A stretch of DNA of 64,000 nucleotides from Oopsacas minuta (Eukaryota > Animalia > Porifera): contig JAKMXF010000321.1 in the NCBI GenBank assembly GCA_024704765.1, positions 868,001 to 932,000 on the forward strand, read 5' to 3'. Under the pieces are notes generated by a model that made no database searches, had not been told where the DNA came from, and saw only the letters and a program-made list of their open reading frames with translations. Below, piece by piece: positions 3,907 to 22,803 of this stretch. Every line of letters starts with the position of its first letter. Position 1 is the stretch's first letter. The translations under genes were made by a program, and so were the position numbers.

Positions 3907-5540
3907 TCATCCTTTTGTATCCTCCGAATACTCCTGTTTATGAGAATACGTGTAATTTACAGGAATATTTCCATTAGTTGCGTAGTGATATTCAATTTTA
4001 GAAGTATCTATCTGATTCAATAAGTCAGGAATATTCATAGCCCATTTTACTTCAATTTGATAATCAGGATTTTTAGTTTGTTCTATGTCTAATCTTAGTT
4101 TATCAATTCCTTGTTCTAAATCATTTAGTATTCTATGCTGTAATTCTGGTATATAATTATGGGAAATTGTATCTGCTTTTTCTTTTAGTTCTTTCAACTT
4201 AGTTAAATCAATTCGTTTTTGTTTTTGTTCCTGAATAAATTCTTCCTCCAATTTAGCTAATTCTCTAAACATTTCATTTTTCTTCTCCACTAGCGCTAAT
4301 ACTACTCTGTTGATTTGAACATCAATTTTCCCTCTAGTTTCTCTGAATACTGGGTGAGAAGTATCTGACTGTACATTATAATTATCTGTCCGTTGCTCAT
4401 CCCGCCATGCTATAAATACAATCAACTATGTTTAATTAATATTTGATACACATTAGTTTCTGGCGGTTTGTTTCAATCAAGCGAGTAAACTAAGAGATCC
4501 AATGGGTACAAATATTTCATACCAAATGGTCCAGATTAATCAGTGTCCCTATTAAGCAAAAGTAAGTCAACTGAAATGAATTGGAAGGAATATTACACAA
4601 TTTATACCTTGGACATGAGAATGCTATGAACATTCCTATAGTATATTCTTATATAGCGTATCCACTGAATGGGACAAAATAAGTCGAACAGATTTTCAAA
4701 TATTTACATCCTCAGATAGACAAAGAAACTCGAAAAGAAAAAAACTAAAACACAAAAAAGTGTCCATCAGCTGAGGATTATATATTTTTGTTCTTTTCAG
4801 AGTGGCACGCCCCCCTGACCCTCCGTGTAGATGCCGCAATGCACCAGATCCAAACTGATATGGGCTCTTGGATCTGAGAAATATTTCAAGATATTCAATA
4901 TTATTCGTCCCCTACTGAACTTCATGTTCTATCCTCAAATCTTATGGATAAAATTCTAAATAATTATCTTCCAATCACTCCCTGTCTAATGAAATCTCCA
5001 GCATTAGTTTGAATAATATGCAAAAGGGTGTGATATTAATCATATGGTAAATCTTTGAATTTGTAAATTCAGACTTTGAAAATATCTCAAATCGGACAAC
5101 ATGCTGAGACCTAATCTCTAGCTTGATTTTGTATTTACATAGAAAAATGTGGAAATATGAATAATCACCAAAGAGGTGCGTTCACTTCAGAACAATTCAT
5201 GTTGAAATCGCGTTATTTTGTCCTATCTAATTTTTGTGCAGCTCCTATAGGGAAATGCCCTAATGGCATGGAGGATACGTCCGACTGAATGTTGTATCCA
5301 AGGAAAGTTTATTAATACAAATCAAGCATTTGTTCCTCGCCCCTCGCTTGACAAATCAAGCAAGGAACGAGGGTCAGAATTAAATTGTAGTGAACAGCGA
5401 AAGTGGACGAATAGTAGAGTAAAAAATTTATATATTTATATCCTAATTACATAACATGATAATAAGAAAAGGGATCAACAGAATATACCTTTGCACAGTT
5501 GTAGAGAGCATAGTTGGAGCAGGAGAATAAACAGCAACAT
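3907..5540 (-). CDS. Secreted coiled-coil protein, 184 aa, 2 exons (5540-5489, 4409-3907)
   Basis: 52-nt exon encodes MLLFILLLQLCSLQLCK (signal-peptide-like) and ends at phase-1 donor AAG|GTATAT. Acceptor TTTATAG|CA at 4410-4411 joins in frame to the 3907-4425 ORF (heptad-rich EKKNEMFRELAKLEEEFIQEQ...). The same exon structure is retained in the paralog. Confidence 0.7.
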
Positions 5541-6143
5541 TATCATAACATTCTAATCACACAAAACTTAATATAAGCCAAATTTTCTATATCCATTAGC
5601 AAACCCTATATTGAAATTCAATGAATAAGGTGAAACAAATTTCCCAATATTGGAGATTAAATATATATTCAAAAGATAGGTTACTACATACAAATCTACA
5701 ACCAATCAATCTAGTGGGGAAAATCATTTGTGTCCAGCGTTCCCTCTAAGTGAATGAGGGCACAATATTATAGTTGTCTAGGGTGGCAAATATTGTAACC
5801 ACCTCTAGGGTCGCCCTACTGAGGGGTAAGGTCCAAAAATGAGAAAATTCCGGGGAAACCCCCTGATTTCTTAGAGGGAGCATGATTGTGTTGTTAGGGG
5901 ATTTACGTGTAGGAACCTAAGCTACTGGTTAGATAATACAATTCAAAATTTGCTATATATTAAGTTTTCAAATCTTATCCAAACAAATTGGCCTGAACAA
6001 TCATAATCATCATAAGATCAATCCTTTTGTGCTACTGTTCAGAATGAGTATATAAACCTATGACGGCCGTATCACAGAGGTATAGTTAATACATATAATA
6101 TCTGTATAACTAATATTATTACTCATTGTGTAATTAATAATAG

Positions 6144-6878
6144 TCAATCTTCTATCTTACTCTTATCGGCCTGTTTAGCTAATTGCTTTTCTCTTTCCTT
6201 ACTAACATGTGTTTTAGCTCCGTAAATGAGTTGATGGCTACACAGAGCTTTTAACGGAGACAACAACACACCAGGGATAAGTGGATCTCCCTCAATGTGT
6301 TCTAGACAGAATGCTATAGCTTCTATAGTAGACAGACAGCTGTCTGTAGGCTGTGTTCTTATCACGTACTGACTTGTCTGCTTAATATCAATTGATAAGT
6401 GAGTCAATTCACTCAGATAATTATTACCTTTATACATAGACTTAGCTTGTCTCCATGTCCCGTCTATAACAATAAGATACTGTATAGCAGGAATAGGTGT
6501 AGAGCTTGGTAATACAATAGCGTCAGATAGAGGATATAGAACAGCGCATTGTGGTCTGTTCTCCAAACATTGACGAATAATTGGATATTTCAAAGGACTA
6601 AAGTTCTTACCGCGTAATACTGTACATTTCTTAGAAACCACACATTTACTAAGGAGAGGTACTGTAGCCATAGGTCGCTTGATTTCGTTGGGATGTTGTA
6701 AGATGATAAGGTGTGTATGTATATTGAGAGGATCTTTCGGAAAAGAAGCACATATGCACACTGTGTTAGGTCTATTACAAGATTGACAGATATCTCTCGT
6801 TACAGCCACAGCACCTGAAAGGCTGGTTACATCATCTAGTTCAAGGAGACTAGAGAAGAAATCTTCATTCGTAGCCAT
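6144..6878 (-). CDS. DTWD2: tRNA-uridine aminocarboxypropyltransferase (DTW domain), single exon
   Basis: CQSCNRP..VCIC, LIILQHPNE, LIVIDGTWRQAK and STIEAI motifs of DTWD2/TapT. Start placed at MATNEDFF (6878), 4 nt after an acceptor-like AG. Confidence 0.9.
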   Translation of the reverse strand: MATNEDFFSSLLELDDVTSLSGAVAVTRDICQSCNRPNTVCICASFPKDPLNIHTHLIILQHPNEIKRPMATVPLLSKCVVSKKCTVLRGKNFSPLKYPIIRQCLENRPQCAVLYPLSDAIVLPSSTPIPAIQYLIVIDGTWRQAKSMYKGNNYLSELTHLSIDIKQTSQYVIRTQPTDSCLSTIEAIAFCLEHIEGDPLIPGVLLSPLKALCSHQLIYGAKTHVSKEREKQLAKQADKSKIED

Positions 6879-7003
6879 GTAGCTAATCATTGTAATGTGA
6901 GATGTCAATGCAGATTTAGAGGAAATAAATCGTTCATAAATATTAGCAAAGAGTTTATGAAATAATAATACATTATACAACACTAAAATTGAAAGGCTTA
7001 GAA

Positions 7004-10000
7004 TCAGGTACTAAATTGTGTCCATTTTTCTATTTGTTTCAGGTACAAACTAATCAAGCAACTCTCTTCGTTTGTGTTTAGAATAGTATTGAGATTATCT
7101 GGTAAATTCTCACCCAAACTTTCCATTAGTTTTATAACACATAATAATCCTGTAATCTGTCTGTATAATAATGAATTAGAAGATAGCATTCCATCCAGAG
7201 GGTGGGTGGTTGCTAGGTTACTAGAGAGTATATTGGATTTAGTATTGATATATTCGAATAAATATCGCACAAAATTTCCAAATAATTCAGTTTGTTTAAG
7301 ATTAATAGAAACTAATCGAAGAGTTTTAAAAGCTAATTCACAATTAACGCAATCTTCTCCATAAATGTTATCTTTTCCCTTTTCAAACAGAACTACTTCA
7401 TCTTTAACTGCATTGACATTTATACAAATCTTAGAAGAAATATAATCAAGCATTAATTCCCAACATTCCTCAAGTATAAACAATGTATTCGCTAGCCATG
7501 TGAATACAAGTTTGAGTGTAATATGATTGTCTAGGGGAAGATGCGAGTCCAATACTTGTGAGATACAAGTAGCAAGTGAAGTACGTACATCAACTACCTC
7601 ATCTTGAAGAAGAATAATCATATTCTTAATTATTACAAATTGAATTGTAGAGATAGGCCGAAATAAACTTGGATATAGAGTTAGAGAAGAGAATATTTTG
7701 ATAAGATAATTAACAGCTATTAATCTAGAATCTTCTGAGGAATCGGGTTTACTATGTGTATTTAATAATCTGGTTAAAAGAGCAAACAATTCTATTTCTC
7801 TTTCTATAAGTAAATGTGGATAATTAATCTTACGTATTAGTATAATGCTAGATATTTGTAGACAGCATAACTCTAGCTTTAGACTCGTATACATTGTGCT
7901 ATACCTGAGAATATAGTTTGTTAACTGATTGAAATCTACATCAAAACAGTTAGAATTTAGCGTAATAACATGCCCTAACATTTGTACCAGTATTTCTAGA
8001 TGAGAACATATATCAGTATGAGATGAGCCATCAGGCATATGCACATAGCGTTTGAATAGACTAGCATAAGTATTATTAGAATTCTCAAGTAGCCAAGGTA
8101 GTATTTGAGGATGTTCAAGAAGTTCAGTACATAAACTGCGAGAATCTTTGACGATAGAGATTGTATTGAATAACTTTGCACTAAACTTAATCAAGAGAGA
8201 TTGTGTGACTGTATTAGAGCTTGAGAGATAGAATTGTATGATAGAGAAATATAGATTAATACTGTGTACATCTAATTTTGTTTGTTCTGATAATTCATAC
8301 AACAAACTTGAATTCAACTCAACTGAATTTAACATACAAACAATAGAGAGGTATACTTTTCTAACCATCAATGGTGTATCTTCAGAGATTAACCATTTAC
8401 ATCTATAAATACATTGATGCACCTTAATCAAGGCACTGCTAGATCCTGTATTATACAATACATAGTTTAGCCTTATTAACTCAGCGAGGAATTCCAATTG
8501 TCCATGCATATAATTGTAGCTAACACATTGCTCTATTGAGTCAGGAATCTTTTCTAACACATGTAACAGTACAGTATCTACGCCTGATTTGTATATGAAC
8601 ATTGCTAGAGCTTGACTTGCCTTACAACGTACTGAGTACACAACTGAGTGTGTGTACACCTGTAGTACACGGATATAGGAAGATTTCTCTGAGAAGTTGT
8701 AATTAGGAGATGGACATAGCTTACACAGGAATAATAGAACTGGATAAACCGCAGAGTGTAGATGAGTACTTGGACAATCTGATGGAGAGTTTAGTTGTGA
8801 TAAGAACAGAGATCTTATTAAAGGAAAACGAGTGAATAACTGTTGCAATGTAATTGTACTCAGTTCTATCGCATCTTCAGATAATCTCCTCTGTCCTAGC
8901 ATTCTAACAGCTAATGCACCGAATAGCATCATGCCAGCATTACGTACTGACCACAGAGACGATCTCATGCTAGTGACAGCTATATATAACCCTCTCTCTC
9001 CATAGGAGAGAACACATCTATTCCCAACAGTAGAATCTCTATACAGAATACGTAGTATATTCATACAGCGTACAGATACCAGATCATGTGTATCTGATAC
9101 TAATACTGCTTCTGTAGCACCAGCATGTGTAAGCAGTTTATCCATAGTAAACTGTAGGAGAGGTTTGTGTGGCAGTTTAGATTCAGAGCACAGGATAGAC
9201 TGTACACAGAAAGGTAGACCAGCTCCCTGTCTAGAAATGGATGACTTTACATCCTGTGAGGTTGTAGTGTTAATTATATCGTCTAGCCATTGAAAAATTA
9301 AGCAACAAACAGCTGGCATATTGCTGTTACTAATGGAATAGCAGAATTTAGTGAAAGCTGATTGACAAGTGAGTATAGCTCCTATATGTCTGCATTTCAT
9401 TAGAATTGCTATTAGAATAGAACCTATCTTCTCTACTAATTCAGGTGTTACTACTAACATATTCTTATCTACTGGTGTTGTAATACCAAATACATCAGGG
9501 AGAATACCAAGCAAAGAAGAAGCTTCCTTCAGAGCTAACCAAACACAGTTATTAACCAGCTGATAGCTGAAGGAAGAACAATCGGTGTGATGTGTGGTAC
9601 TATCAGCATTGTTGTGTACAGATAGTACTGCTGTCTCTATTGCTACTCCCATATCAGCAAATGAAGGAGCTAGCATATCCTCATTGTTACTACCCATTAG
9701 CGTTGTTAAGGAGAATGTTATGACGTCATCTAGAAGTGCTATCAATTCTCTAAGGTATTGCTGCCAATCTATTTCCATTACATCACTATCAATCTTATGA
9801 GTTAGTACAGAGTTAATTGCAGCTATTGCACTGAATAACGGAGCGTTATATGCTGCATCTAGAATATTCTTCTTAGCTGCCACAAACTGTGTAGAAACCA
9901 CATCCAATAAGTCCACACATAATCTATACTGTAACTCCTTAGGATTAACAGATAAATTATTCTGGATAGAATTGTCTAGATATATTCTTAGCAATAGAGC

Positions 10001-12052
10001 TCCTATCTCTCCATCATATACTCTAGAAGAAGTGATCAGCTGTTTCCCTGTAGCGTATAATCCTGTTGGAAATACACTGTGAATAGCTGCTATAGTATTT
10101 TTATTAGCTAGATATGGAGTTATGATTGTTGTGGCTAGTTCTCTAATCTCAAAATAATCACTAGTTAGACATAGAGAAATGAGAGTCAAATCAGATAACG
10201 TTAACAATTCAAATTCTACTGGAGCTAACATAGTGTAGATGTTAAGCTTAGCTCGTTTGCTCTTAGAATTAGACTTCTTAGTCTCTACAGGACGAATAAA
10301 GCTGTCTACCAACGACTGGTACATAGATAAACCCACAGTAACCTTCTGGAATGTAGAATCAGGTAAGAGACATTGTAACGAGATAAATCTATAGAAAGAT
10401 AGTATGCTTATAAAATATATATATTTCTGGTGAAAACATTGAGTAGATTCTACAGATTTCTCTCTAGGCATGTTGTCAATTAATACAGCTTGTATGCAAG
10501 TAATGGATTTGGTTATAAGGAGACTGAGTTTCTGTCTGAAAGGTGATGATGACGGGTTTAGATTATAAGGTATAAATTCACGGATAAGATCTAATCTCCA
10601 TAATCGAGAACTATCAAATGGAACTGTTAACACAATGTATAACGCTTCTATACGAATATATTCATCGCCTGAAGACAATCCATCTCTTAGGATACCAATA
10701 CAATTATCAGTAATTTTTATGATATCCAAATTAATACTGTATTTGAGGTATTGAATAGCTGCATAGAGTATATTAGTATAAGTAGGGGATAGAGAGTGCG
10801 AATGTGTTATGTAATCACATTTTTCAGATTGAGAAAGAGCATTCAGTAGTTTTGTTATTGGAGAATTAACTTGTATAGAAATACCATATATGGTGTCTAT
10901 AATTATTTGAGAAGATTGATGAATAGATTTGAGTGTAGCAGGCAACCAGTATTGAGTCAGATTATGTCTCTCATTATGATCGTTACTCAAGAGGGATCTC
11001 ATAAATGGGTGTAACCAGGTTTCTATCCAATTCTCTATAGAAATATCTTTAATAAGAGTTTTATACAGCTCGGATGCAGCAGTGTAGAGATTTGTAGTAG
11101 ACATACAGTTAGTTAGCTCGTTAGTCAGATTTATGTGTGCATTTAGTATAACAGATGGAGACACGAATTCACAGAGTATGTGTAGTAAGATATATCTGGC
11201 TTTTGAAGCCCATGGTATTGCTAGTGTGTTTTTGAGATATTTTAGAAAGAAAGAAGAATCTTGTCCTGACCATGTTAGATATCTCTGATAGAGTATGAAG
11301 TATTTTCGTAGAATTAATTTAGTATTTTCAGGAATTCCAGGAAGAGCTTCTTCAATATATTTCCAGACAAAATCCTGTATAAATGTATGCAATTCAGATT
11401 GTATTCCAAAAACATTTTTATCATTTTCAGAATTATAAGAAACTTGTTTGAAATATAACATAGCAGAATCTAACCATTGTATTAGAGAATGAGAGAATGT
11501 TGTAATATAGAATGATAACAGTTCATTTTGAAATAACACGAGTAATTGTTTGAGGAAGAATTGATAAATAATAGAATTGCTGAATGAATCTGAAAATAAA
11601 AAGTTATTAATAATCTTATCTTTTCCAGCAACAAATTCTCTGAGAAAGATCAGTTTAAGAAAAATATTCGTATTCTTCCTACAAGAAAGCTGTAGTAAAC
11701 TAACTGAGGGGTTAGTTAGAATCTCTTGATTTATCTCAAATCCAAACTGCTTCGAAAGTAAAATGAAATTAGCCAAGAATTGCTGTACAGAATTAGAAAA
11801 TGCTATTAGAATCTTTTGTATGAATATGAAGCATACAATAGCTATATCTTTACTAGATATATGTGTAATAATTATATCAGAGAGGTTGTCTATCAGAAAA
11901 GAAGCTTGTTTATTTGAGATAACATCATTTGGTATATTATTAAGGAACTGATTGAGTGTATATCTTAATTGCTGGAGGAGGGTTTCCGAGTTTAAGTTAG
12001 CGTCAATTTTTTGAGATGATAGATCTTCTAAAAGGCTTGTGTAGTTGCTCAT
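7004..12052 (-). CDS. THADA: THADA / Trm732 homolog (tRNA Nm32 methylation adaptor), 1682 aa, single exon
   Basis: DUF2428 motifs SRQGAGLPF, VRCMNILRILYRDS and WSVRNAGMMLFGAL within a long helical-repeat protein. Confidence 0.92.
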   Translation of the reverse strand: MSNYTSLLEDLSSQKIDANLNSETLLQQLRYTLNQFLNNIPNDVISNKQASFLIDNLSDIIITHISSKDIAIVCFIFIQKILIAFSNSVQQFLANFILLSKQFGFEINQEILTNPSVSLLQLSCRKNTNIFLKLIFLREFVAGKDKIINNFLFSDSFSNSIIYQFFLKQLLVLFQNELLSFYITTFSHSLIQWLDSAMLYFKQVSYNSENDKNVFGIQSELHTFIQDFVWKYIEEALPGIPENTKLILRKYFILYQRYLTWSGQDSSFFLKYLKNTLAIPWASKARYILLHILCEFVSPSVILNAHINLTNELTNCMSTTNLYTAASELYKTLIKDISIENWIETWLHPFMRSLLSNDHNERHNLTQYWLPATLKSIHQSSQIIIDTIYGISIQVNSPITKLLNALSQSEKCDYITHSHSLSPTYTNILYAAIQYLKYSINLDIIKITDNCIGILRDGLSSGDEYIRIEALYIVLTVPFDSSRLWRLDLIREFIPYNLNPSSSPFRQKLSLLITKSITCIQAVLIDNMPREKSVESTQCFHQKYIYFISILSFYRFISLQCLLPDSTFQKVTVGLSMYQSLVDSFIRPVETKKSNSKSKRAKLNIYTMLAPVEFELLTLSDLTLISLCLTSDYFEIRELATTIITPYLANKNTIAAIHSVFPTGLYATGKQLITSSRVYDGEIGALLLRIYLDNSIQNNLSVNPKELQYRLCVDLLDVVSTQFVAAKKNILDAAYNAPLFSAIAAINSVLTHKIDSDVMEIDWQQYLRELIALLDDVITFSLTTLMGSNNEDMLAPSFADMGVAIETAVLSVHNNADSTTHHTDCSSFSYQLVNNCVWLALKEASSLLGILPDVFGITTPVDKNMLVVTPELVEKIGSILIAILMKCRHIGAILTCQSAFTKFCYSISNSNMPAVCCLIFQWLDDIINTTTSQDVKSSISRQGAGLPFCVQSILCSESKLPHKPLLQFTMDKLLTHAGATEAVLVSDTHDLVSVRCMNILRILYRDSTVGNRCVLSYGERGLYIAVTSMRSSLWSVRNAGMMLFGALAVRMLGQRRLSEDAIELSTITLQQLFTRFPLIRSLFLSQLNSPSDCPSTHLHSAVYPVLLFLCKLCPSPNYNFSEKSSYIRVLQVYTHSVVYSVRCKASQALAMFIYKSGVDTVLLHVLEKIPDSIEQCVSYNYMHGQLEFLAELIRLNYVLYNTGSSSALIKVHQCIYRCKWLISEDTPLMVRKVYLSIVCMLNSVELNSSLLYELSEQTKLDVHSINLYFSIIQFYLSSSNTVTQSLLIKFSAKLFNTISIVKDSRSLCTELLEHPQILPWLLENSNNTYASLFKRYVHMPDGSSHTDICSHLEILVQMLGHVITLNSNCFDVDFNQLTNYILRYSTMYTSLKLELCCLQISSIILIRKINYPHLLIEREIELFALLTRLLNTHSKPDSSEDSRLIAVNYLIKIFSSLTLYPSLFRPISTIQFVIIKNMIILLQDEVVDVRTSLATCISQVLDSHLPLDNHITLKLVFTWLANTLFILEECWELMLDYISSKICINVNAVKDEVVLFEKGKDNIYGEDCVNCELAFKTLRLVSINLKQTELFGNFVRYLFEYINTKSNILSSNLATTHPLDGMLSSNSLLYRQITGLLCVIKLMESLGENLPDNLNTILNTNEESCLISLYLKQIEKWTQFST

Positions 12053-12279
12053 CTTTAGGATATTACGAACATTTTGTATCAGAAACTACTTAAATAATCG
12101 CCAAATAGAGTTTTGATATCAAATAATGTAGATTAATGGTTAGAAAGATCTATCTAAATACTGTAGAACGATACATAAAAGTTAATATTTAAGAAAAGTA
12201 TAATTACATACAACATTACAAATTTGAAAGCAAAATCATTCACCAATAATTATATGAATGAATATTCACAGATACTATC

Positions 12280-13436
12280 TATAATCTGAATAAGAGGTGC
12301 AGAACATATTTGATATCGATATTATCTTCTTTTGAGCCTTCTTCTGTACAACTTCAAACAAGTAATATAAATTAAATTTAAATTTACAACAACAAAATTG
12401 AAATAAATTACAATTGGCATGAGTAAGCAATTAGCACACTGTAGAGGATAACTTGATAAAGAACAATCTGGGTAGATTCTTGCAGTGTGAACACCGGTAT
12501 ATTATACGTTACATGAAACCAACAAGAATTATAAGAAATAGATTCAAGAAAGATATACAAGTTGTAGAATATCATATTCTCCAGAATATATAACTCAAAA
12601 GTGAACAAGAAAACAAAGACAAGCACCTTATATTGTTTTAACAATCTCTTCTGTTGTAGATACACATTAGTGCTATGGAGATGATATGCATCTATAACAC
12701 GACTATTCATGGCAGGAAAGAATCTCTTCTTAGCTATGTAGACTACGATAAGGAAACTGATTTGATCCATCAAACTTTAAGCTATGACACCAATTAGAAA
12801 AGTATATGGAAATAATACAAAAATTTCAATAAAGAAATATACAACAGTTCCTATAAAGATGAAGCAAAGAACAGTTTTCACCCTCAACTCATTTCTAGCA
12901 GCAAAGGTCAAATGAAGAAGAGATGCACCAAACATCCAAATAATCATGGAAAAAGAAAAAGAGTCCAACAAAATATTTAAATTTCCATGTGTAACACTTA
13001 ATCTATAATCATAATACCCGCCAAGGATAGTATTCGAATCTACGGAGCAGTTAAAACCGATTGGAATTTGATACTCGGAGGAATATAAAACAAACAAACA
13101 AACCCACTGGCAACTCATATTAAGCAATAAATCAGTTCAAAGCACAAAAACAGAAAAAATAATGCTACGAAAGATTTTTTCTTTTTGAATAAAGAGACCA
13201 TTTACATAATAACTGTCATTAATATTATTACACATAAGAGTCTGTAGTCTCCGTTTGTATCGTATTTGTACAAATATATCAATCATGACGTAAAATAACC
13301 AAAAGAGACATAGGATGAGGTAGATTAATTTTATAACCTGATCAATGTAATACAATATAGTATCATAAACATTGCTTATCGATGTTACAACACTCTGAGA
13401 ATTTGAACTAATATTACCTTCTTCTCCAACCATCAT
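12280..13436 (-). pseudogene. Pseudogene of the orphan 7TM family
   Basis: Colinear with intact copies (FFPAMNSRVIDAYHL, KQYKVLVFVFLFTFE, YRYQICSAPL). Has compensating frameshifts near 13160/13075, CAA>TAA nonsense at 12777-12779, a further frameshift near 12420 and a stop before the C-terminal motif. Confidence 0.85.
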
Positions 13437-14623
13437 ATTCCTTTATCAATGGTTTTCTATTATTTTCACATACGTATCTATGTTTATATACAAAAATCAA
13501 CAAAACTTAATAAGCCTATATTATTGAAAGATTTACTTTCTACCGAGATTATTACCTCAGTTTTTAAAGTCTCAGAGTAAGATGGATGCAATGGCACCAA
13601 ATTAATGTTTTTGTCAGCAACCAACAAATGTTGATTTTGTGGATCACTGCATTATATACAAGTTTTACAAAAGAAAAAGTCTGTTAACAAACCGGGAATG
13701 TATCTCAGTGCATTTCAAATTTCTAGAAAGTACTACTATCATCAACATGATTTTAGTATTCAAATTATAAAGGGTGGATGAGATTCATGAGACATAGGCC
13801 CAGAGTTGGTATCGGTTCGGGTTTGATGTTGATAATTTCGTACTTAGCACAATCATACCTGCTAACATAATTGTCTTATATCCCTGTATGGAGCCTCCAT
13901 TTCCCCTGACCCCTGTACGTTAGTCAAAATCCCTGTATACCCCATAAATGTTTTCTGGGTCACAGCGGTCGCTCGTCTAGAAAATCACTCTACACTTACA
14001 CCGAGAATAATTAAACTATCAAGATTTATTATGTACAGGGTGGGGCCGTTAACGAAAATAGGCAAAATCCCTGTATAGTTTACACTGTATAGTTTACAGG
14101 TATTCACATTGTGAATTACATATAACAATCTTTTCTTTCGAATTCTGTCTACTTGTAGAAAGAAATAATTTATATTAATAATAGAATTCTTGACTCCTCA
14201 TATGGAACTCACTAGAGGCCTAGAGGATTTGAATTATGCACTACACGTATATAACTTCGGGTTCAACAGTGTCGGGGTCGGGTTATGAAAAGTGGATCCG
14301 ATTCCAATTCTGCATATCCCATGATTAAACGTTCAAGTAAACGTAGCAGCTATTCTTCTGGCTCAGTAAGGATAAATAATACTATAAGTATTGATTAATA
14401 AACATGAATCAGTCTAGCCTGTAAATTCATTGAAATGTAAGTCAAATGTATTAAAATAAGATTGATAATATGATTAATAATGTAGATAAGAATTAGAAAA
14501 TGTCAAAATTGGAATCTACACATTCGAATACACCTAACTAAGAGTAGAAATGAAATGTTAACATGATTTTGAAATTGAATAATATGCAAAAAGGTGTGAA
14601 AATATGATAAATCATGTGGATAT

Positions 14624-15180
14624 CAGGCCTGGGGTCAATTAATTTGAAATGTAATATAGTAATATTACTTATATATTTTTACTATTACTATTACTCACTA
14701 TTACTATTACAAATTTCTTGATAATTCGTAATACTTTGCTATTATTCAGAATGTCTGAATTATATTATTTAATTGATGATGCCATACAAAGAAATATAAT
14801 ATAATATAATCTAAGCAAATAACTAATATCAATAAATTTATGTGAATTGCATTTGATCATAATTAACTTGTGTAAAACATCATCAAATATTGAATATCTT
14901 TCTGGCATAAATAATTTCCCTGCAATACTAAACAGTCTCTCTACAGGTGCTGATTAGGCTGAGACAGATTAATATTGCTGAGCTAATTTAGCTAATATAC
15001 GTAGAGACTTGCTCTTAACGGCTATAGATGAGTATCAAAGGGTTGGATGAGATAATAGGCATAATTATGTGTAGGATTAAATTGGAATTAGATTAAACCT
15101 CCCAGTAAGCGAAGCTGTTGTTCTCCTGTAGTACTCAATACATACAACTTACAAATATAGTAATTAAAGGACAAGCCGTG
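14624..15180 (-). mobile_element. Degenerate hAT transposon end with C-terminal dimerisation-domain relic
   Basis: Minus strand LAKLAQQY*SVSA*SAPVERLFSIAGKLFMPER...KLIMIKCN matches the hAT dimerisation domain; terminus CAGGCCTGGGGTCAATT at 14624. Confidence 0.75.
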
Positions 15181-15313
15181 TAGACGGGGTAGTAGAATAT
15201 ATTTGGAAACCTCAACCTGTAGATTCATTGAAAAATTTATTTGTTAAAATGTCACAGATTGTCATGCATAAATGAAGAGAATATGAATAATAAGTATCAA
15301 TAATGTCATGAAT

Positions 15314-16045
15314 CTAATCTAGCGACCGATATTGTCTCGTCTTCTTTTCCCTGGGAGGAGATTGATCTCTCTCTCTGGGGTATCGGGAGTGTGAACTGGA
15401 TAGGTGTTGGTAGGATCTGGGGCTTCTAGCACTGTGTATGAGAGGAGAACGACTGTAAGGTCTACTCTTACCCTCCGTGGAGTGAGAACGTGACCTAATC
15501 TTCTGACCATATAGCTTGAAACTGAGATATTTAGAGATAGGCTTGAAATGTACAAAGCCACAATACCCTCCACGAGTACAATCCCCAGTTTCATACAGAC
15601 GACAACAAGCCTCACGAAAGTCAGTCACAGGGGAGAATTCAGCTCGTATTGGCTGTCCATTGAACCATCTGTTGTTGAGAGAGAGCACTGCTTTCTCTGC
15701 ATCCTCTTCCTTACGGAACTTAACATACACATTCCCTATGAGATGATCACCTATGTTATCACACACATTCAGCTCTTCTATCTCTCCGTATTTCTCCTCC
15801 AACTCAATGAACACATCCTCAAAGAATGTGTCGTAATGCTCTTGCTGTTCTCCCCCACTCATCATCTGTAGATTTCCATCAGTGTGCTGGTACAAATTCT
15901 GCATTAGTATAGTCTGACTGGATGTAGGCTTGTTGTGTAGACGGGAGCAGGCCTCTCCGTGACGACATGCTCCTATCTTGAAGTAGAAGGAACAGTTTAC
16001 CTTGTCATTTTTAGTACCGAAGATTGAAGCAAGATATTCTGCCAT
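15314..16045 (-). CDS. U2AF1: Divergent U2AF small-subunit paralog (U2AF1-like B), 243 aa, intronless
   Basis: ZnF1-UHM/RRM-ZnF2 architecture with intact CCCH ligands and an intact ORF. The ORF-track start at 16057 is TTG; the ATG is at 16045. ZnF2 reads CCRLYETGDCTRGGYCGFVHF and the RS tail is degenerate. Confidence 0.88.
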   Translation of the reverse strand: MAEYLASIFGTKNDKVNCSFYFKIGACRHGEACSRLHNKPTSSQTILMQNLYQHTDGNLQMMSGGEQQEHYDTFFEDVFIELEEKYGEIEELNVCDNIGDHLIGNVYVKFRKEEDAEKAVLSLNNRWFNGQPIRAEFSPVTDFREACCRLYETGDCTRGGYCGFVHFKPISKYLSFKLYGQKIRSRSHSTEGKSRPYSRSPLIHSARSPRSYQHLSSSHSRYPRERDQSPPREKKTRQYRSLD

Positions 16046-18010
16046 ACTGTATGGCAATGATTAGCAACAATAAATATTAGCATTCTATACAAATATGCAA
16101 TGACACAATTGAAAATATTATACATCATAGAATGGAATGCAATTTACATGGCTAAAGAACTCAGAGCTAATGGTGATGAAGTTTAGTAAGTATCATTCAG
16201 GTGGATAAAATTTGCTTGAAGTCAACATCCCTGATTTGGTACAAGTGGATTATTCACTTTATGAAACAAATTCCAACCCAAGTCCATACTTACCAACCAA
16301 CCCTGAATCCCTGAATTCTCTAGGACTTTACAGAAATGTAGGGAAATTTTGCAGATATATGTGCCTTTTTCCCAAATATAGACTGAAATTTATGGAAGTA
16401 TACCTTTCATACTTATCAACCCCTGTAACTGCTTCCCTGGATTCCTAATTTTATATGCAAATAATATGAATTTTTCCCTCCATTATAAAAAATAACGCCA
16501 TAAATATTTTCCCGTGGATAATCCAGGGATCACTGGATGGTTGGCAATTTCGCACAAGATTAACTTCTAAGTAATTGACAAGCCAAATGTATTGGAACCA
16601 CTTGTGTCACATGGCTATAATATATTGAGTATTATCATACTGGTTTTCCCAGGTTGGTGAATTGCTAGTTTGCAGTGTGACAACATGGCGATTATGGGGT
16701 AATAGATACTTACACTGAAGATATATGTTAAAATGTTGTCATATATAGTAAATCGATACTGTAAATTTCAAAAATGGCACCAGATTTTTAGTTGCACTTC
16801 TGAAAAATTGGACTATGACGTAATCTGTGGCATTTTGATATAATCAATAATTATGGTTCAAGAATAAATGAGTTCTAAATTTGTGAGTGTGTTATACCAG
16901 CTAGCCCTATTTATTGACAAAGATGAATAACAATGCGTATACTGAATTCATGTATGCATTGGATACTTCATAAAATGATACTAATGAATTAGAAGTACAG
17001 AAATATAAAATGTTATAACGAAAATACAATTTTTCTAAAAATACTTTTCGTCCGAATGGGTCTGCCCCATACACTTAATGTCAAGAAAAGTATAAGTGGG
17101 CGCTTTAGGCGGGTCTATAAATTATTGAAAATTAAATTTATAAAGATATACTATGCGAAATTGTCAACTATTCAACTTGCAATTGTTTGCATTGTAAGAT
17201 CGGGGACCTAAAAGGTAGGTCAAAGAGCTGAAACATGGATAACATTAGACGGCTAAAAATGCTTTGAGAATGAAAAATAAAGATTTAATTTGTTTTGCAA
17301 ACGAGTTAAAATTAATCACTAAATACATACGAATACTGATAAATGCCATTGAATTACTAAAAATCCTGGAATGCTGAAATATTACAAGGTTATTTGAAGA
17401 ATAAATATTTGTGGTTTTCAGGTTTACAAATTTCAAATTTTGCCTAAGTTTGAGCCTTTGGTTAGACATGTTATAAGTTCATTAAGCAACTAATAATAGA
17501 ATATTTCTAGGTTTGAAATAGTGAAAAATCGAATACACGCTCATTAATTTTGGTAAATAGCTAAGTCAAATTTTCGCCTATTACCGCATAGTTCCACACT
17601 GTGGTTTGCTAGGTAATAAGTAGTTATTAATACAAGTTTGAAATCATTTCTAGTAGTGTTATGCTCTAGTAATCTAGTCTACTCGTCTGTTCGCCAAATC
17701 TACAACTTTGGATGAAGTGTACAATAGCGTCGATACAATGTTTCAGTTGACAAGTTGGTGCGTGTTTCGTTTTCCCGCTAATTTATAATCCCACTTTGGA
17801 CTCAAGGACATTTCATGTCTGCAAAAAAGCCCTGGATGGATGTCTGGATCTCGGAAGTTCGGCTAAACATGCATATATTGATTAGTTGCATGGGTTAAAT
17901 TCATTGAATAGTCATGCATTAGCTAAACTAATAGTGACAGACAAAATTTGGTGAATAGCTAAAATTAGGACAGTTATACAAATCATTTATCAATAATGTC
18001 AGTTATGATT

Positions 18011-18769
18011 CTATTCTCGTGACCGAGATCTTCTCCTCTCCTTATCTCTGCGAGGAGATCGACCTCTCTGTCTCCCAGGGGAGCGGGAGCGACGTCTGGG
18101 TGATCTGGGGCTTCTAGTCCTGCGTCTGGGAGGAGAATGACTGTAAGATCTATTATATCTCTCCGGTGAGCGAGAATGTGACCTCCGGATAATTTTCTGA
18201 CCGTACAGCTTGAAGCGAAGATCCTTAGAGATAGGCTTAAGATGCATAAAATTACAATACCCTCCACGTGTGCAGTCTCCAGTTTCATACTGACGACAAC
18301 AAGCCTCACGAAAGTCAGTCACAGGGGAGAGTTCAGCTCGTATTGGCTGTCCATTGAACCATCTGTTGTTGAGAGAGAGCACTGCTTTCTCTGCATCCTC
18401 TTCCTTACGGAACTTAACATACACATTCCCTATGAGATGATCACCTAGGTTATCACACACATTCAGCTCTTCTATCTCTCCGTATTTCTCCTCCAACTCA
18501 ATGAACACATCCTCAAAGAACGTGTCGTAGTATTCCTGCTGCTCTTCCTCACTCATCAAGGAGAATGTCTGTAGAGTTCCGTCAGGGTTCTGAGTACGAG
18601 TAGCAGGGTTCTGGTATAAATTCTGCATTAGTATAGTCTGACTAAATGTAGGCTTGTTGTGTAGACGGGAGCAGCCCTCTCCGTGACGACATGCTCCTAT
18701 CTTGAAGTAGAAGGAACAGTTTACCTTGTCCTTTTCAGTACCGAAGATTGAAGCAAGATATTCTGCCAT
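18011..18769 (-). CDS. U2AF1: Splicing factor U2AF 35 kDa subunit, canonical, 252 aa, intronless
   Basis: MAEYLASIFGTEKDKVNCSFYFKIGACRHG..CSRLH, CCRQYE...CNFMHLKPIS, RS-rich tail. Confidence 0.97.
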   Translation of the reverse strand: MAEYLASIFGTEKDKVNCSFYFKIGACRHGEGCSRLHNKPTFSQTILMQNLYQNPATRTQNPDGTLQTFSLMSEEEQQEYYDTFFEDVFIELEEKYGEIEELNVCDNLGDHLIGNVYVKFRKEEDAEKAVLSLNNRWFNGQPIRAELSPVTDFREACCRQYETGDCTRGGYCNFMHLKPISKDLRFKLYGQKIIRRSHSRSPERYNRSYSHSPPRRRTRSPRSPRRRSRSPGRQRGRSPRRDKERRRSRSRE

Positions 18770-19134
18770 ACTGGCAGTATTAATAACAATAAAGGAAGTA
18801 AATTCTAAACTACAGACTCGTATTTAGAATACAACTAAATATGAAAATGGATACAAGAATATGCTAGGAGGACAGTAATATTATTATTGTTGTCCTGCTT
18901 CAAAGATAAAATATTGTGTAGCTGATTTACATTCAGAAAATGATGTGGTTAGACTGGAGCAGAACAATAATCAGACTCATATGACAATAAGTTGATGGAA
19001 GGTATGAGAAATCTACGAAATTGAAGATCTATTTTCTTAAATAAATTCTATTATAATAAAATGAATTACAATTCTAACAGGCATCTACTACACTACACAA
19101 TTGGACAATTTGACATCTAAATATAACTAAAGAG

Positions 19135-22100
19135 CTACAACAGAGGTTCAATACTAATCTCCAATACAGAGCAAGGCATTGGTAAGTGAAAATTAGCTAA
19201 CACAGTAGGATGCAATACACCGAAATTCCCAATCTTCTTACCTTTAAATAATACCTGTACACATCTGCCTGGGAAATATGACGGTTCATCAACAGCCTCT
19301 AACTCATACCCAGTATCCTTATCTCTCACTACATCTACCAGTAACATAACACGTTCTAACAGACCATGTATTATCTCAAAACCAGCTGTTGTACTAAAGT
19401 AAGCAGCACACAAGTTCCTGGTGTTCTCAGCTTGTACATCTCTGTTTGGAGTCTTAAGCGCTATATCTGATATCTCAAATACTTTGAGTGGTTTAGCAAG
19501 ATTTAGGTTAGAAGATAGAGTCTTGAGGATACCAGGAATGAGAGAGGTACGTACCACCTGGAATTCTGCTGCTTTAGGGTTAGCTACATGTACTGCTGGT
19601 ATCTAGTAGGAAGAAGACACAACATGATATTCTAGTGAAATATATAATTGAAAAATTTCAAATACATAAATAGATATCATTTCTTGGTCGGAACTCAGAA
19701 GCGCCATGGGTATCTAGAATTCTAGATACGAACTGTCTCTACTCTCAAGAGATCGTTTGAATATCCCCTCTGATTAGGGGAAGCTAGGGGTTGCTGGCAA
19801 CCCAAGCACCAACCCTTGGAATACTACTAGCAACCGCACAGCAACTCGAAAGAGGAATTCTAGATAAACCACTGAGACCTCCAAAACGTGATATCAACCA
19901 AAGGAAGTCAAAATAATATGACACCTTCCTAAACAATCACCCACAAATAATAACCAGTGTAAACACACCTCTTTTAGTTGTAGTTGTAGATTTAGTCTCT
20001 CACAGATATCCTTCCTACCACACATAATGAATGTTAGCAGCTCTGTAAATCCAGCCTCAGCTAGCTCTAGTCTTAGTAAGTCAGTTAGTTTATTCAGAGG
20101 CTGTTGCCTACCCGTAGTACTCATATCAGGTAGAGATCTGGGTATCTTGTTATACCCATAAGCTATAGCATAGTCCTCCATTATATCACATGGGTGTATG
20201 ACGTCAGCACGTGTGGGAGGTACACTGATTACGATATTGTCCCCAGAGGGGTCTGGATGTGAAGTTAAGCACATTCTAGTCAGCAGCTTAGATACCGTGT
20301 CTGAATCTGAGTTAAGACCTAATCCCTGGTTCAGATAGGCTACAGACACCGATTCAGATCTGTAAGATAGATCTGGATACACCTTCTTGCTACCATCTGG
20401 ATTCTCTATCTGGTAGAAGAGAATGTAGTGATTATAATGTTTATGAGGGTACCATTAAGCTGTAGTCGGTTAAATGACACGCTTAGCAAGTTAATGAGTA
20501 CGCAATCGAGACGTTTGGGAATTTATCCCATCACATAATCATGTGTAAAATACCGCATATGGAGTATGGTTCTGCTGACTCTATTAGTAAGATAGCAAAA
20601 ATTTTGAGAAAACTTGCCTCACAAGGTTCAGCAGTAAACTGGTTATCACAATACTCGCTGAACATAGTAACAACAGTATTGAGTACTATATGAGCCTTAT
20701 TGAGGTCAGTTGCTGTGACGTCAATGAATAGATTCCGTGTGTTCTCATCCAGGCGTGTGTGGTTACCGTTTATAATAGGAGGGAGTGATAGCAGTACTCT
20801 GTTCTTATCATAGATAACTGGATATCTGGAAAAAATATACATAATAAATTAAAGGAAATATAATTCTGGGTTTCAACATTCAGGAATGTCATAGTAATAA
20901 ACGTGTATAACATATATTAGGTATTCATTTAAAAGGACAATTTCAAAGTTATTTTCTATAAAATATATCCTGAAAAGTGGGGATTAAAATTTAAATAAAT
21001 GAATCTCGTACAGACAAATTTTCAAGCTTCCACTCCTGAACACCCAAATTCACATACTACTAGTACATATATGGTAAAATTCTGGGATATTTTGACCCAG
21101 CGGTTTTACTAAAGTTGAATTCACCCCTGACAGGTGTGCCTTGAAATTAACTTAAATATGTGAACCGCATTTCGAAAAGTTTGAGAAACGCTTGTGTAAA
21201 AATTAGGAAATCATCAAAGCTACAAAATTGAATAAATATGAGGTCATAAACCTTGGTTTCTTCTCTATAATATGTAGATACGGCTTGAGGTGAGGATCTG
21301 ATTTGTATAACTGCATTAGTTCTTTAGCAGTAAACTCCTTGGTCTGATTAAGAGGAATAAACTTAATATCTTCAGGAGGAAGAGCTTCATAGGTAAAGGG
21401 ACCTTCTATAGAGTCTAGGTTATGGATTCCTATTGAGGCTAACGTTCTATAAAATATAAAACTGTATATCAAAATTCATGGAATTATATGTGGGATATTT
21501 GAGCAAATTTGAACAATAAAAGTACGTATATGTAATAGAATATACTCTAATACAATAAACTCCATTACTACAGTATTACCATCGCGGAAAATAGCTCTCT
21601 TAATCTGAAATTTATTATTAAGAACTATATTTGCCAAATTCAAATTGATTATATAACCACACATTATAGTAACTAACCTCTCTCTACAGATATTGTGGTG
21701 TAGCTTCTCTTGTAAATCAATAAGAGAGTCATAACGTGTTTTGTTAAGAGTGACTCCTCTCAGAACAGCTGCTAGACAGAACGGCCTCACATCAGCTGTT
21801 TCAGGGAGTACCCTAAGCTTCTGACAGACTCCTTCAGATAAAACTCTGTATGAATAATAATGTTAATTTCAAAGAGGATTAATAATTTAATTTAGTAAAT
21901 CTAGTATACTATAAAAGATCTTTGGCCAGTAGCCTAGCCCCACCTCGAATACACGTCCCTCTATAATCCCCTACTTTTGATAAGGAGTGTAACTATAACC
22001 AACTAGTCGGGTAGGAAATCTTTCAACGCTAAAGAAACACATTAGAGGAGTATATGAATAATTCATGTAAGGTAGAACTCGGGTAATTACACTCGGCTAA

Positions 22101-22803
22101 ATTAACACGTATTTTCGTTTATTAGATACATTTCTCCAAAACGGATTTCTATTTTTGTAAGAAGAATACTCAGATAAGATAATTTTCTAGACGTTTAGGC
22201 TTGCATGGTTCCAAGAACAAAATATGTAATTTACCTATCTAGAGTGCTTAAGTCCATATCTAAGCTTAAGCTTCTTATCAAAAATAGCGTACACATATAC
22301 AGTCAACTATAGATATATCAAAGCTCATTTGACTGTGTTAATTACTTCCATATAAAGCGATGAGATCTGTTACTTTGACGGTTCAGGCAACATTTGTACA
22401 ATTTCAGACTTTGATATAAATGGTATCTAACCATTATCTACTATGTATTTAGATATATCCGTGTTCGATATAATGTGAGTTGACTGTAACTTTAATTTAT
22501 CCTTGAAAATGCCTAGAAACCACTCTGAAATTGAAAAACTTACCTATAAATGTGAGCATGTTCCTTATTGCAGAGGAATACATTGAGTGCTCTAGTTAAT
22601 CCCTCAAAACATAACAAGTCATATCTGTTAGCTGGTATTTCAATTTTATAATTTCTTACTACAACCCCTCCCTCTTCTACATCCTCCCACTCATCCAGCT
22701 CAATACCAAACTCGAAACAGAGCTCATCGAACTCTTTCATACACATCTCATTACGATCTATCGCTTGAAGCAAGCTCTTCTCTGCTACTGTAAACTTAGG
22801 CAT
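19135..22803 (-). CDS. FARSB: Phenylalanyl-tRNA synthetase beta subunit, 579 aa, 6 exons (22803-22544, 21845-21678, 21446-21252, 20825-20618, 20409-19969, 19602-19135)
   Basis: Motifs [59 protein letters not shown] and [15 protein letters not shown]. Exon phases sum to 1740 nt in frame; intron 4 is GC-AG. Confidence 0.95.

Follow-up and report, generated by a model that had tools for sequence, protein, structure and literature searches.

A second U2AF1-like gene, here called B, lies close to the canonical copy (A) in the window, the whole 64,000-nucleotide stretch of Oopsacas minuta contig JAKMXF010000321.1 that was analysed. It is best explained, with about even confidence, as a lineage-specific tandem duplicate that is apparently weakly transcribed, has been kept open and encodes a minor, looser-reading variant of U2AF35. 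Judged from its sequence, B is an unannotated, lineage-specific paralog that is weakly constrained and probably working, and an altered splice-site specificity of its product is plausible. The AG at which an intron ends is chosen through the zinc fingers of U2AF35; Q157, which is replaced in B, is a cancer hotspot because its change re-weights acceptor choice. A and B form a natural pair with an identical core, with which the contribution of the Q157 and N170 side chains could be tested.

In the ORF listing of the window, A and B are both found on the minus strand and are separated by 1,965 bp. The order along this strand is phenylalanyl-tRNA synthetase beta pieces, A, B, THADA and DTWD2:

~19138-22803, minus strand: pieces of phenylalanyl-tRNA synthetase beta (FARSB)
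18011-18769, minus strand: canonical U2AF1 (A), an intronless ORF of 252 aa
16047-16075, minus strand: pyrimidine-rich tract and CAG acceptor, the acceptor ending 1 nt before the ATG of B; the upstream homology of A and B ends here
15314-16045, minus strand: paralog B, a U2AF1-like CDS in an intronless ORF of 243 aa plus stop
7004-12052, minus strand: THADA
6147-6869, minus strand: DTWD2

The protein of B starts with MAEYLAS, the ORF lister beginning four codons earlier at a TTG, and its stop codon is the TAG at 15314-16. The initial annotation had described a second intact U2AF1-like ORF beside the canonical copy, and this was borne out by the open frame, by matches of both proteins to the Pfam domains zf-CCCH and RRM_1 (zf-CCCH in B with E=1.7e-10) and by the 79% identity between them. 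A is 94-96% identical to the canonical U2AF1 of related assemblies and is the parent or the conversion donor of B. Homology between the DNA of A and B sets in ~28 nt before the start codon, within a pyrimidine tract that closes with CAG|TATG, and stops ~25 nt past the stop codon, the outer flanks being unrelated. The conserved CAG|TATG context that had been reported precedes both start codons. The two genes are separated by five indels of 21, 9, 6, 12 and 3 nt, all of them in frame as had been stated. The G+C content of the window is 34%.

A processed pseudogene or retrocopy was ruled out, since A and all copies of the relatives are equally intronless, the A/B homology reaches past the acceptor into the pyrimidine tract and the 3' end of the homology is not followed by an A-run. 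An assembly artefact or collapsed haplotype was ruled out by three DNA-like libraries, in which sequence peculiar to B has the same depth (~60) as the baseline. The Leu codon CTG discussed below was spanned by DNA-like contigs of two libraries from one sample, with no alternative letter listed. Within-sample SNPs in B, too few to be of use, were R195K, one synonymous change and I98L, of which I98L, like 'L147F' in A, probably comes from contigs crossing between the identical A/B tracts.

Between B and THADA, at 12408-13436 on the minus strand, a row of three hydrophobic-looking ORFs (99-121 aa) had no Pfam match; they may be exons of a single unannotated gene. No Pfam match was found among five neighbouring ORFs, and no Rfam match in the whole window. 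At 14471-14641, 14984-15154 and 16694-17548, the depth of the DNA-like runs was 5-15x the baseline (~60) with many loose ends. These stretches are dispersed repeats that flank B and fill the A-B spacer.

B keeps what the fold and the pairing with the large subunit require, namely eight zinc ligands and a UHM one Leu-to-Ile exchange away from that of A. The parts of the protein are located as follows:

15935-15994, minus strand: zinc finger 1 (C18...H37), with F20, C27, R28 and S34 kept and G32A as the sole change
15548-15607, minus strand: zinc finger 2 (C147-x8-C156-x5-C162-x3-H166), ligands intact in alignments
15596-15598, minus strand: CTG, encoding Leu150 of B (human Q157, yeast Q151); CAG in A
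15557-15559, minus strand: GGC, encoding Gly163 of B (human N170, yeast N164)
15317-15505, minus strand: degenerate RS tail, aa 181-243, predicted to be disordered (pLDDT <60)

The ligands of zinc finger 1 (C18, C27, C33 and H37) are all present, and those of zinc finger 2 (C147, C156, C162 and H166) correspond to human C154, C163, C169 and H173. The earlier statement that the zinc ligands and S34 are kept was confirmed in the alignments. In the UHM, the R-W-F motif (NNRWFNG) and the acidic EDVFIELEEKYGEIEE helix are the same as in A, L to I being the sole A/B difference, and the features predicted to bind the ULM of U2AF65 are thus retained. An AlphaFold model of B built with 59 homologues had a mean pLDDT of 82 with a disordered tail. 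It matched yeast U2AF23 (4yh8/7c06) with a TM of 0.83-0.91 depending on the target, and 1jmt was matched too.

Human U2AF35/U2AF1 and Schizosaccharomyces pombe U2AF23 (4YH8, 7C06-7C08) share with B the ZnF1-UHM-ZnF2 arrangement and the eight zinc ligands, and F20, C27, R28, S34, R156, R165, C169 and F171 of the canonical proteins are present in B. The identity of B to the yeast U2AF23 chain, on which its model superposes, is 52-54%. B departs from the canonical proteins by Gln157 to Leu, Asn170 to Gly, M172V, L174F, E12K, K13N and F42S (human numbering). The CAG>CTG change at 15596-15598, opposite CAG in A, had been pointed out in the initial annotation together with the other six changes, and all were found. 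B also carries G32A, L to I in the UHM, L144F, D to Y and R to S. The loop is, as claimed, 10 residues (7+3) shorter than in A and about as long as in yeast U2AF23. The tail of B is full-length, with 12 arginines vs 24 in A and 10 RS/SR dipeptides vs 14. It had been called largely replaced, which is overstated for a tail that is degraded (half the arginines, RS/SR 14 to 10), and the description of B as RS-less does not hold with ten RS/SR dipeptides remaining. S. pombe U2AF23 functions without an RS domain (PMC7505975).

In the S. pombe U2AF23-UAGGU crystal structures, yeast Gln151 (human Q157) is adjacent to -1G and +1G, and Q151R alters the -1 preference of the yeast protein (PMC7505975). 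Yeast Asn164 (human N170) contacts -1G by a bond from its side-chain amide to O6, and the same residue encloses N6 of -2A together with F20, C27 and R28, which is why m6A at -2 weakens U2AF23 binding (PMC7505975). The remaining RNA contacts are F165, R150, R159, C149 and C163 (PMC7505975). In B, only Q157 and N170 are altered among the structure-listed RNA contacts and all others are present, so that the canonical AG/+1 pocket is incomplete: R156, R165 and F171 are kept, Q157 is Leu and N170 is Gly. The proposal that B is changed in its splice-site-reading pocket is in keeping with these contacts. Since the N170 side chain is a direct -1G contact, N170G is at least as significant as Q157L, on which the initial annotation had put the weight.

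Both positions are strongly conserved. Position 157 was Gln in 130 of 132 mostly animal homologues, with B and the broken fragment P0131 as the exceptions. Position 170 was Asn in 125 of the 132, and all exceptions were glass-sponge paralogs, including fragment P0131. Among 58 more diverse eukaryotic representatives, Q (50), P (3), D (2) and L, K and S (1 each) occurred at position 157, and N (52), H (3), G (2) and S (1) at position 170. E12, which is K in B, was kept in 57 of 58 diverse homologues. F42 and K13 are near-invariant among animals and Q157, N170 and M172 are likewise rarely changed; B is altered at all of them.

Comparison with relatives used holobiont-style ENA assemblies and one Logan contig with a matching neighbourhood. 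THADA of these relatives is 55-65% identical to that of the window and the dS of canonical U2AF1 is ~1; they are therefore distant relatives. In one assembly the order is FARSB-U2AF1-THADA-DTWD2, and U2AF1 is present once. An RS-less U2AF1 paralog of 219-226 aa is found directly upstream of THADA in three other assemblies, named P0017 (with the haplotig allele P0132), P0022 and P0289:

L001 10001-10669, L002 16-693, L011 6332-6991 and L008 10001-10681: older RS-less U2AF1 paralog, upstream of THADA

Over their 5' two-thirds these paralogs have been homogenised with canonical U2AF1, and their zinc finger 2 is strongly diverged, with C154S, Y158F, E159L, T164N, N170G, L174F and a truncated tail. 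Gln157 is retained in P0017 and P0022, and the stretch with the first cysteine of zinc finger 2 is replaced in P0289; in the L011 paralog this stretch reads KSAVASF. F22S and a duplication of 12 nt (QNLY) distinguish the haplotig allele in L008. The frame is open in four of four sequences. Among themselves the RS-less paralogs have an omega of 0.19-0.46 in zinc finger 2 and 0.25-0.46 in the short tail, and are thus under purifying selection. P0127, a third copy in one of the three assemblies, is mildly changed and has N170S. N170G and L174F are common to four of four glass-sponge RS-poor paralogs, with N170S in a fifth.

P0017, P0022 and P0289 resemble B in being tandem to U2AF1 and upstream of THADA, in their homogenised 5' part and in N170G and L174F. 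They differ from it in having lost the RS tail, which in B is degraded. The search for orthologs that had been proposed confined Leu157 to B, the paralogs of the relatives having kept Gln or lost the stretch. No orthologue of B was found in the databases searched with the whole protein and with zinc finger 2 plus tail.

In trees with the paralogs of the relatives, A and B clustered with bootstrap support of 99% for the 5' part and 92% for zinc finger 2, and the RS-less paralogs formed their own clade with 100% support. Synonymous states in zinc finger 2 that are peculiar to the window lineage are common to A and B. B as a sequence orthologue of the RS-less paralogs is unsupported, as both trees and synonymous states place it with A. 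The dS between A and B was 0.11 for codons 1-146, 0.59 for zinc finger 2 and 0.33 for the tail, and ~1 between species. By these comparisons B either stems from a duplication of its own or is an older copy that A has overwritten. Codons 163-167 of B form a 15-nt island that differs from A at 7 positions and includes two residues also found in the paralogs of the relatives. The island may be left over from a common origin or may reflect parallel change, the chance of two identical shared changes being put at ~6% by the author's estimate.

Part of B is almost indistinguishable from A:

15587-15826, minus strand: A-like tract of 240 nt, codons 74-153 of B, with 0 synonymous and 3 nonsynonymous differences (L to I, L144F, Q157L)

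The longest A/B segment with <=3 differences measured 242 nt, a length reached in 0 of 20,000 permutations (P<5e-5). The 240-nt tract lacks synonymous differences, and therefore recent gene conversion between A and B has taken place. The homogenised core comprises the end of zinc finger 1, the UHM and the first half of zinc finger 2; the distal half of zinc finger 2 and the RS tail have diverged from A. Changes in the core after conversion number 3 nonsynonymous and 0 synonymous. The Leu codon is the last difference of the tract before the divergent part, so that Leu157 is either very recent or just outside the conversion tract. Its position at the edge of a recently converted tract means that the change may be young.

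Even a dead copy can look intact when conversion acts on it, which counts against the preferred reading. The closest rival is a decaying, functionless duplicate in which conversion repairs the 5' two-thirds and too little time has passed for stops to arise elsewhere. It is possible, though judged to fall well short of an even chance, and the conversion tract, a third of the gene, is in its favour. A/B differences were polarised with four outgroup copies. In the folded domains, 20 nonsynonymous and ~11 synonymous changes were assigned to the B lineage, and 0 and ~9 to the A lineage. At a neutral site ratio of ~4:1, the folded-domain omega is ~0.46 for B and ~0 for A; between species, the omega of A is 0.03-0.05. 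That all 20 polarised folded-domain nonsynonymous changes fall on B and 0 on A fits decay, but their number is below neutral expectation, with omega <1 at P ~0.03 by a rough binomial estimate made by hand and not scripted.

In the tail of B, 26 nonsynonymous and 6 synonymous polarised changes give an omega of ~1.4, which is indistinguishable from neutral, and the pairwise A-B omega of the tail is 1.04. A tail evolving neutrally or faster (omega 1.0-1.4) argues for decay and against the preferred reading, and so do the changes in B at near-invariant sites (E12, F42, K13, Q157, N170 and M172). In simulated neutral trials with the observed number and spectrum of changes, the frame stayed open in 4-18%. 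The probability of meeting no stop under neutrality is up to 0.18, which suits decay and alone is not small. Five in-frame indels of five would be expected in ~0.4% of cases if lengths were random, a figure that is too low because tail repeats favour multiples of three. All five being in frame, with two of them in the loop outside the converted tract, nevertheless speaks against decay, as does the maintenance of comparable RS-poor paralogs by purifying selection in related sponges. The finding of B in one genome only speaks for it. The dN/dS that had been called for was, on the B lineage, ~0.46 in the folded part and ~1-1.4 in the tail, against ~0 for A. Taken at the level of sequence, there is moderate evidence that the frame of B is retained under much relaxed constraint, and relaxed constraint fits the data on B at least as well as a new function does.

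Transcription was considered with four sequencing runs of one sample, three of them with a flat depth of ~60 and none recorded as RNA. The libraries of the Oopsacas minuta genome paper are RNA-seq, DNA-seq, mate-pair and PacBio. The fourth run, X3, has uneven depth and Illumina adapter ends; on these grounds, and given the RNA-seq library in the genome paper, it was read as RNA. The depth of X3 was 5,000-22,000 over A and 27-85 on intergenic contigs, and B-specific contigs had depths of 145 (15001-15465) and 543 (15773-15951). B is apparently transcribed at ~1-10% of A, although expression is poorly measured by contig depths and X3 is RNA by inference. The RNA-like depth of ~1-10% is what a decaying duplicate might leave, but the B-specific contigs exceed the intergenic level. 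Expression, named earlier as a point to be checked, was accordingly seen above intergenic depth and far below A. A strong dominant effect of B, which had been suggested, is disfavoured by this depth, poorly measured as it is.

Contigs of X3 also join the locus to non-genomic letters:

18835-18836, minus strand: AG acceptor 66 nt upstream of the ATG of A, where an X3 contig is joined to a foreign leader ending in ...ACTTACAG

A further X3 contig with non-genomic letters is joined at the CAG 1 nt before the ATG of B. Once letters compatible with either side are allowed for, the two leaders have ...ACTTACAG as their 3' end. The joint at the acceptor of B is unassignable to B vs A because the first 33 nt of both CDSs are identical. 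Spliced-leader trans-splicing has been reported for the glass sponge Aphrocallistes (PMC10282587). The leaders at the AG acceptors at 18834-18836 and 16046-16051 have a common 3' end, ...AACTTACAG, and are different further upstream, suggesting variant spliced leaders.

As a minor U2AF35 variant, the preferred reading, B would be translated and would compete with A for U2AF65, and conversion would hold its U2AF65-binding core identical to that of the canonical gene. Without the side chains of Gln157 and Asn170, it would discriminate 3' splice sites more weakly or loosely at -1/+1. With half of the tail arginines lost, it would recruit less well via the tail. B would be under weak purifying selection and would not be a finely tuned new reader.

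A putative dedicated reader of a distinct acceptor class, as proposed in the initial annotation, here retuned by Leu157 and Gly170, is an unlikely identity for B. Its targets would be acceptors with a non-G +1, a non-canonical -1 or an m6A-marked -2A, such as spliced-leader acceptors abutting start codons (CAG|TATG). Both changed residues line the -2A/-1G/+1G pocket, and the altered -1 preference of yeast U2AF23 Q151R (PMC7505975) and the reduced AG preference of tunicate U2AF1-beta (PMC13326754) are in line with retuning. The recurrence of N170G and L174F in the four glass-sponge RS-poor paralogs, and of N170S in the fifth, would agree with it as well, as would glass-sponge spliced-leader trans-splicing (PMC10282587) with the leader-joined contigs at the locus. 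However, Leu is absent from the paralogs of the relatives, constraint is relaxed throughout and the apparent abundance is low. RNA-contact residues were struck by ~2 of ~14 folded-domain substitutions in B vs ~1 expected, which is about chance and not significant. The highly expressed canonical A itself stands behind such acceptors, which are therefore evidently handled by the canonical protein.

The one Leu at position 157 among the 58 diverse representatives is natural as well (CCRLN) and belongs to the small U2AF subunit of a lichen fungus, Gyalolechia ehrenbergii (KAI4173782.1); a related seven-member JGI cluster named 'splicing factor U2AF subunit' has it too. Its natural presence in the lichen fungus means that Leu need not change the job of the protein. 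The G. ehrenbergii protein has an otherwise canonical zinc finger 2 with Asn170 kept, whereas Asn170 is lost in B. The cancer hotspot mutations Q157P/R of U2AF1, which shift the +1/-1 preference (PMC4317169; PMC7505975), strike the same residue as the Leu of B. They are somatic changes to Pro or Arg, or a deletion, in an otherwise canonical protein; the Leu of B is natural and accompanied by the loss of Asn170.

Mammalian U2AF26 (U2AF1L4), a paralog of U2AF35, retains the pairing with U2AF65 although its C-terminal RS region is reduced. It is old, conserved and intron-containing with a canonical pocket, whereas B is young, known from one genome only and changed in its pocket. U2AF26 is named as a mammalian paralog in the paper on U2AF1-beta of the tunicate Fritillaria borealis, a natural paralog whose preference for AG is reduced (Nucleic Acids Res 2026; PMC13326754). 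Like B, U2AF1-beta is a lineage-specific U2AF1 duplicate beside a conserved copy and has diverged in an RNA-binding zinc finger. The changes lie in zinc finger 1 and a UHM Phe in F. borealis, and in zinc finger 2 in B. In F. borealis, moreover, U2AF2 is duplicated, the two paralogs are similarly expressed and 95% of the introns are non-canonical.

A U2AF1 paralog with altered specificity in a tunicate, RS-poor small subunits and a fungal Leu157 are already known. Distinctive here are the combination of Q157L and N170G in an animal and the recurrent loss of N170 in glass-sponge paralogs. Selection maintains N170G/L174F paralogs in other glass sponges, a hint that a second, looser reader could be of use in a group with spliced-leader trans-splicing. 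A broader proposal, that glass sponges repeatedly evolved or long retained a loose second reader with N170 lost, RS shed and the core converted, is regarded as improbable. If it were true, the loose reader would serve acceptors that the canonical protein handles poorly, namely spliced-leader acceptors with a non-G +1, non-AG ends and an m6A-marked -2A. The m6A-marked -2A would be admitted because the methyl group is normally excluded by Asn170, and the Oopsacas copy would add Q157L.

Several observations were made on the related assemblies and on more distant U2AF1-like proteins. The one-strand order FARSB-U2AF1-THADA-DTWD2 is conserved between the window (6147-22803, minus strand) and a distant relative (L003, L004) in which THADA is 55% identical. 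In the L010/L011 relative, U2AF1 and THADA are on separate contigs. One contig of ERZ25071281 carries three U2AF1 genes (L006 10001-10759, L007 3001-3759 and L001 10001-10669), ~22 kb and ~10 kb apart. The first of these, P0127, has A6D, G10V, E to G and N170S with a full RS tail, and ORFs with Tc3-like HTH and weak RAG1_RNase_H matches lie between the copies. At L009 2228-3274, two U2AF1-like pieces stand head-to-head at ~2694 of a 5.4-kb contig. Either a foldback or an error of assembly may lie behind this arrangement, which accounts for P0131, an odd protein of 179 aa. Five U2AF1-like proteins from Logan contigs (P0215, P0252, P0254, P0260 and P0269), with a zinc finger 2 of the form KCRPF...CHFMH, have Pro at the Q157 site, which is the residue of the cancer mutation Q157P, and His at the N170 site.
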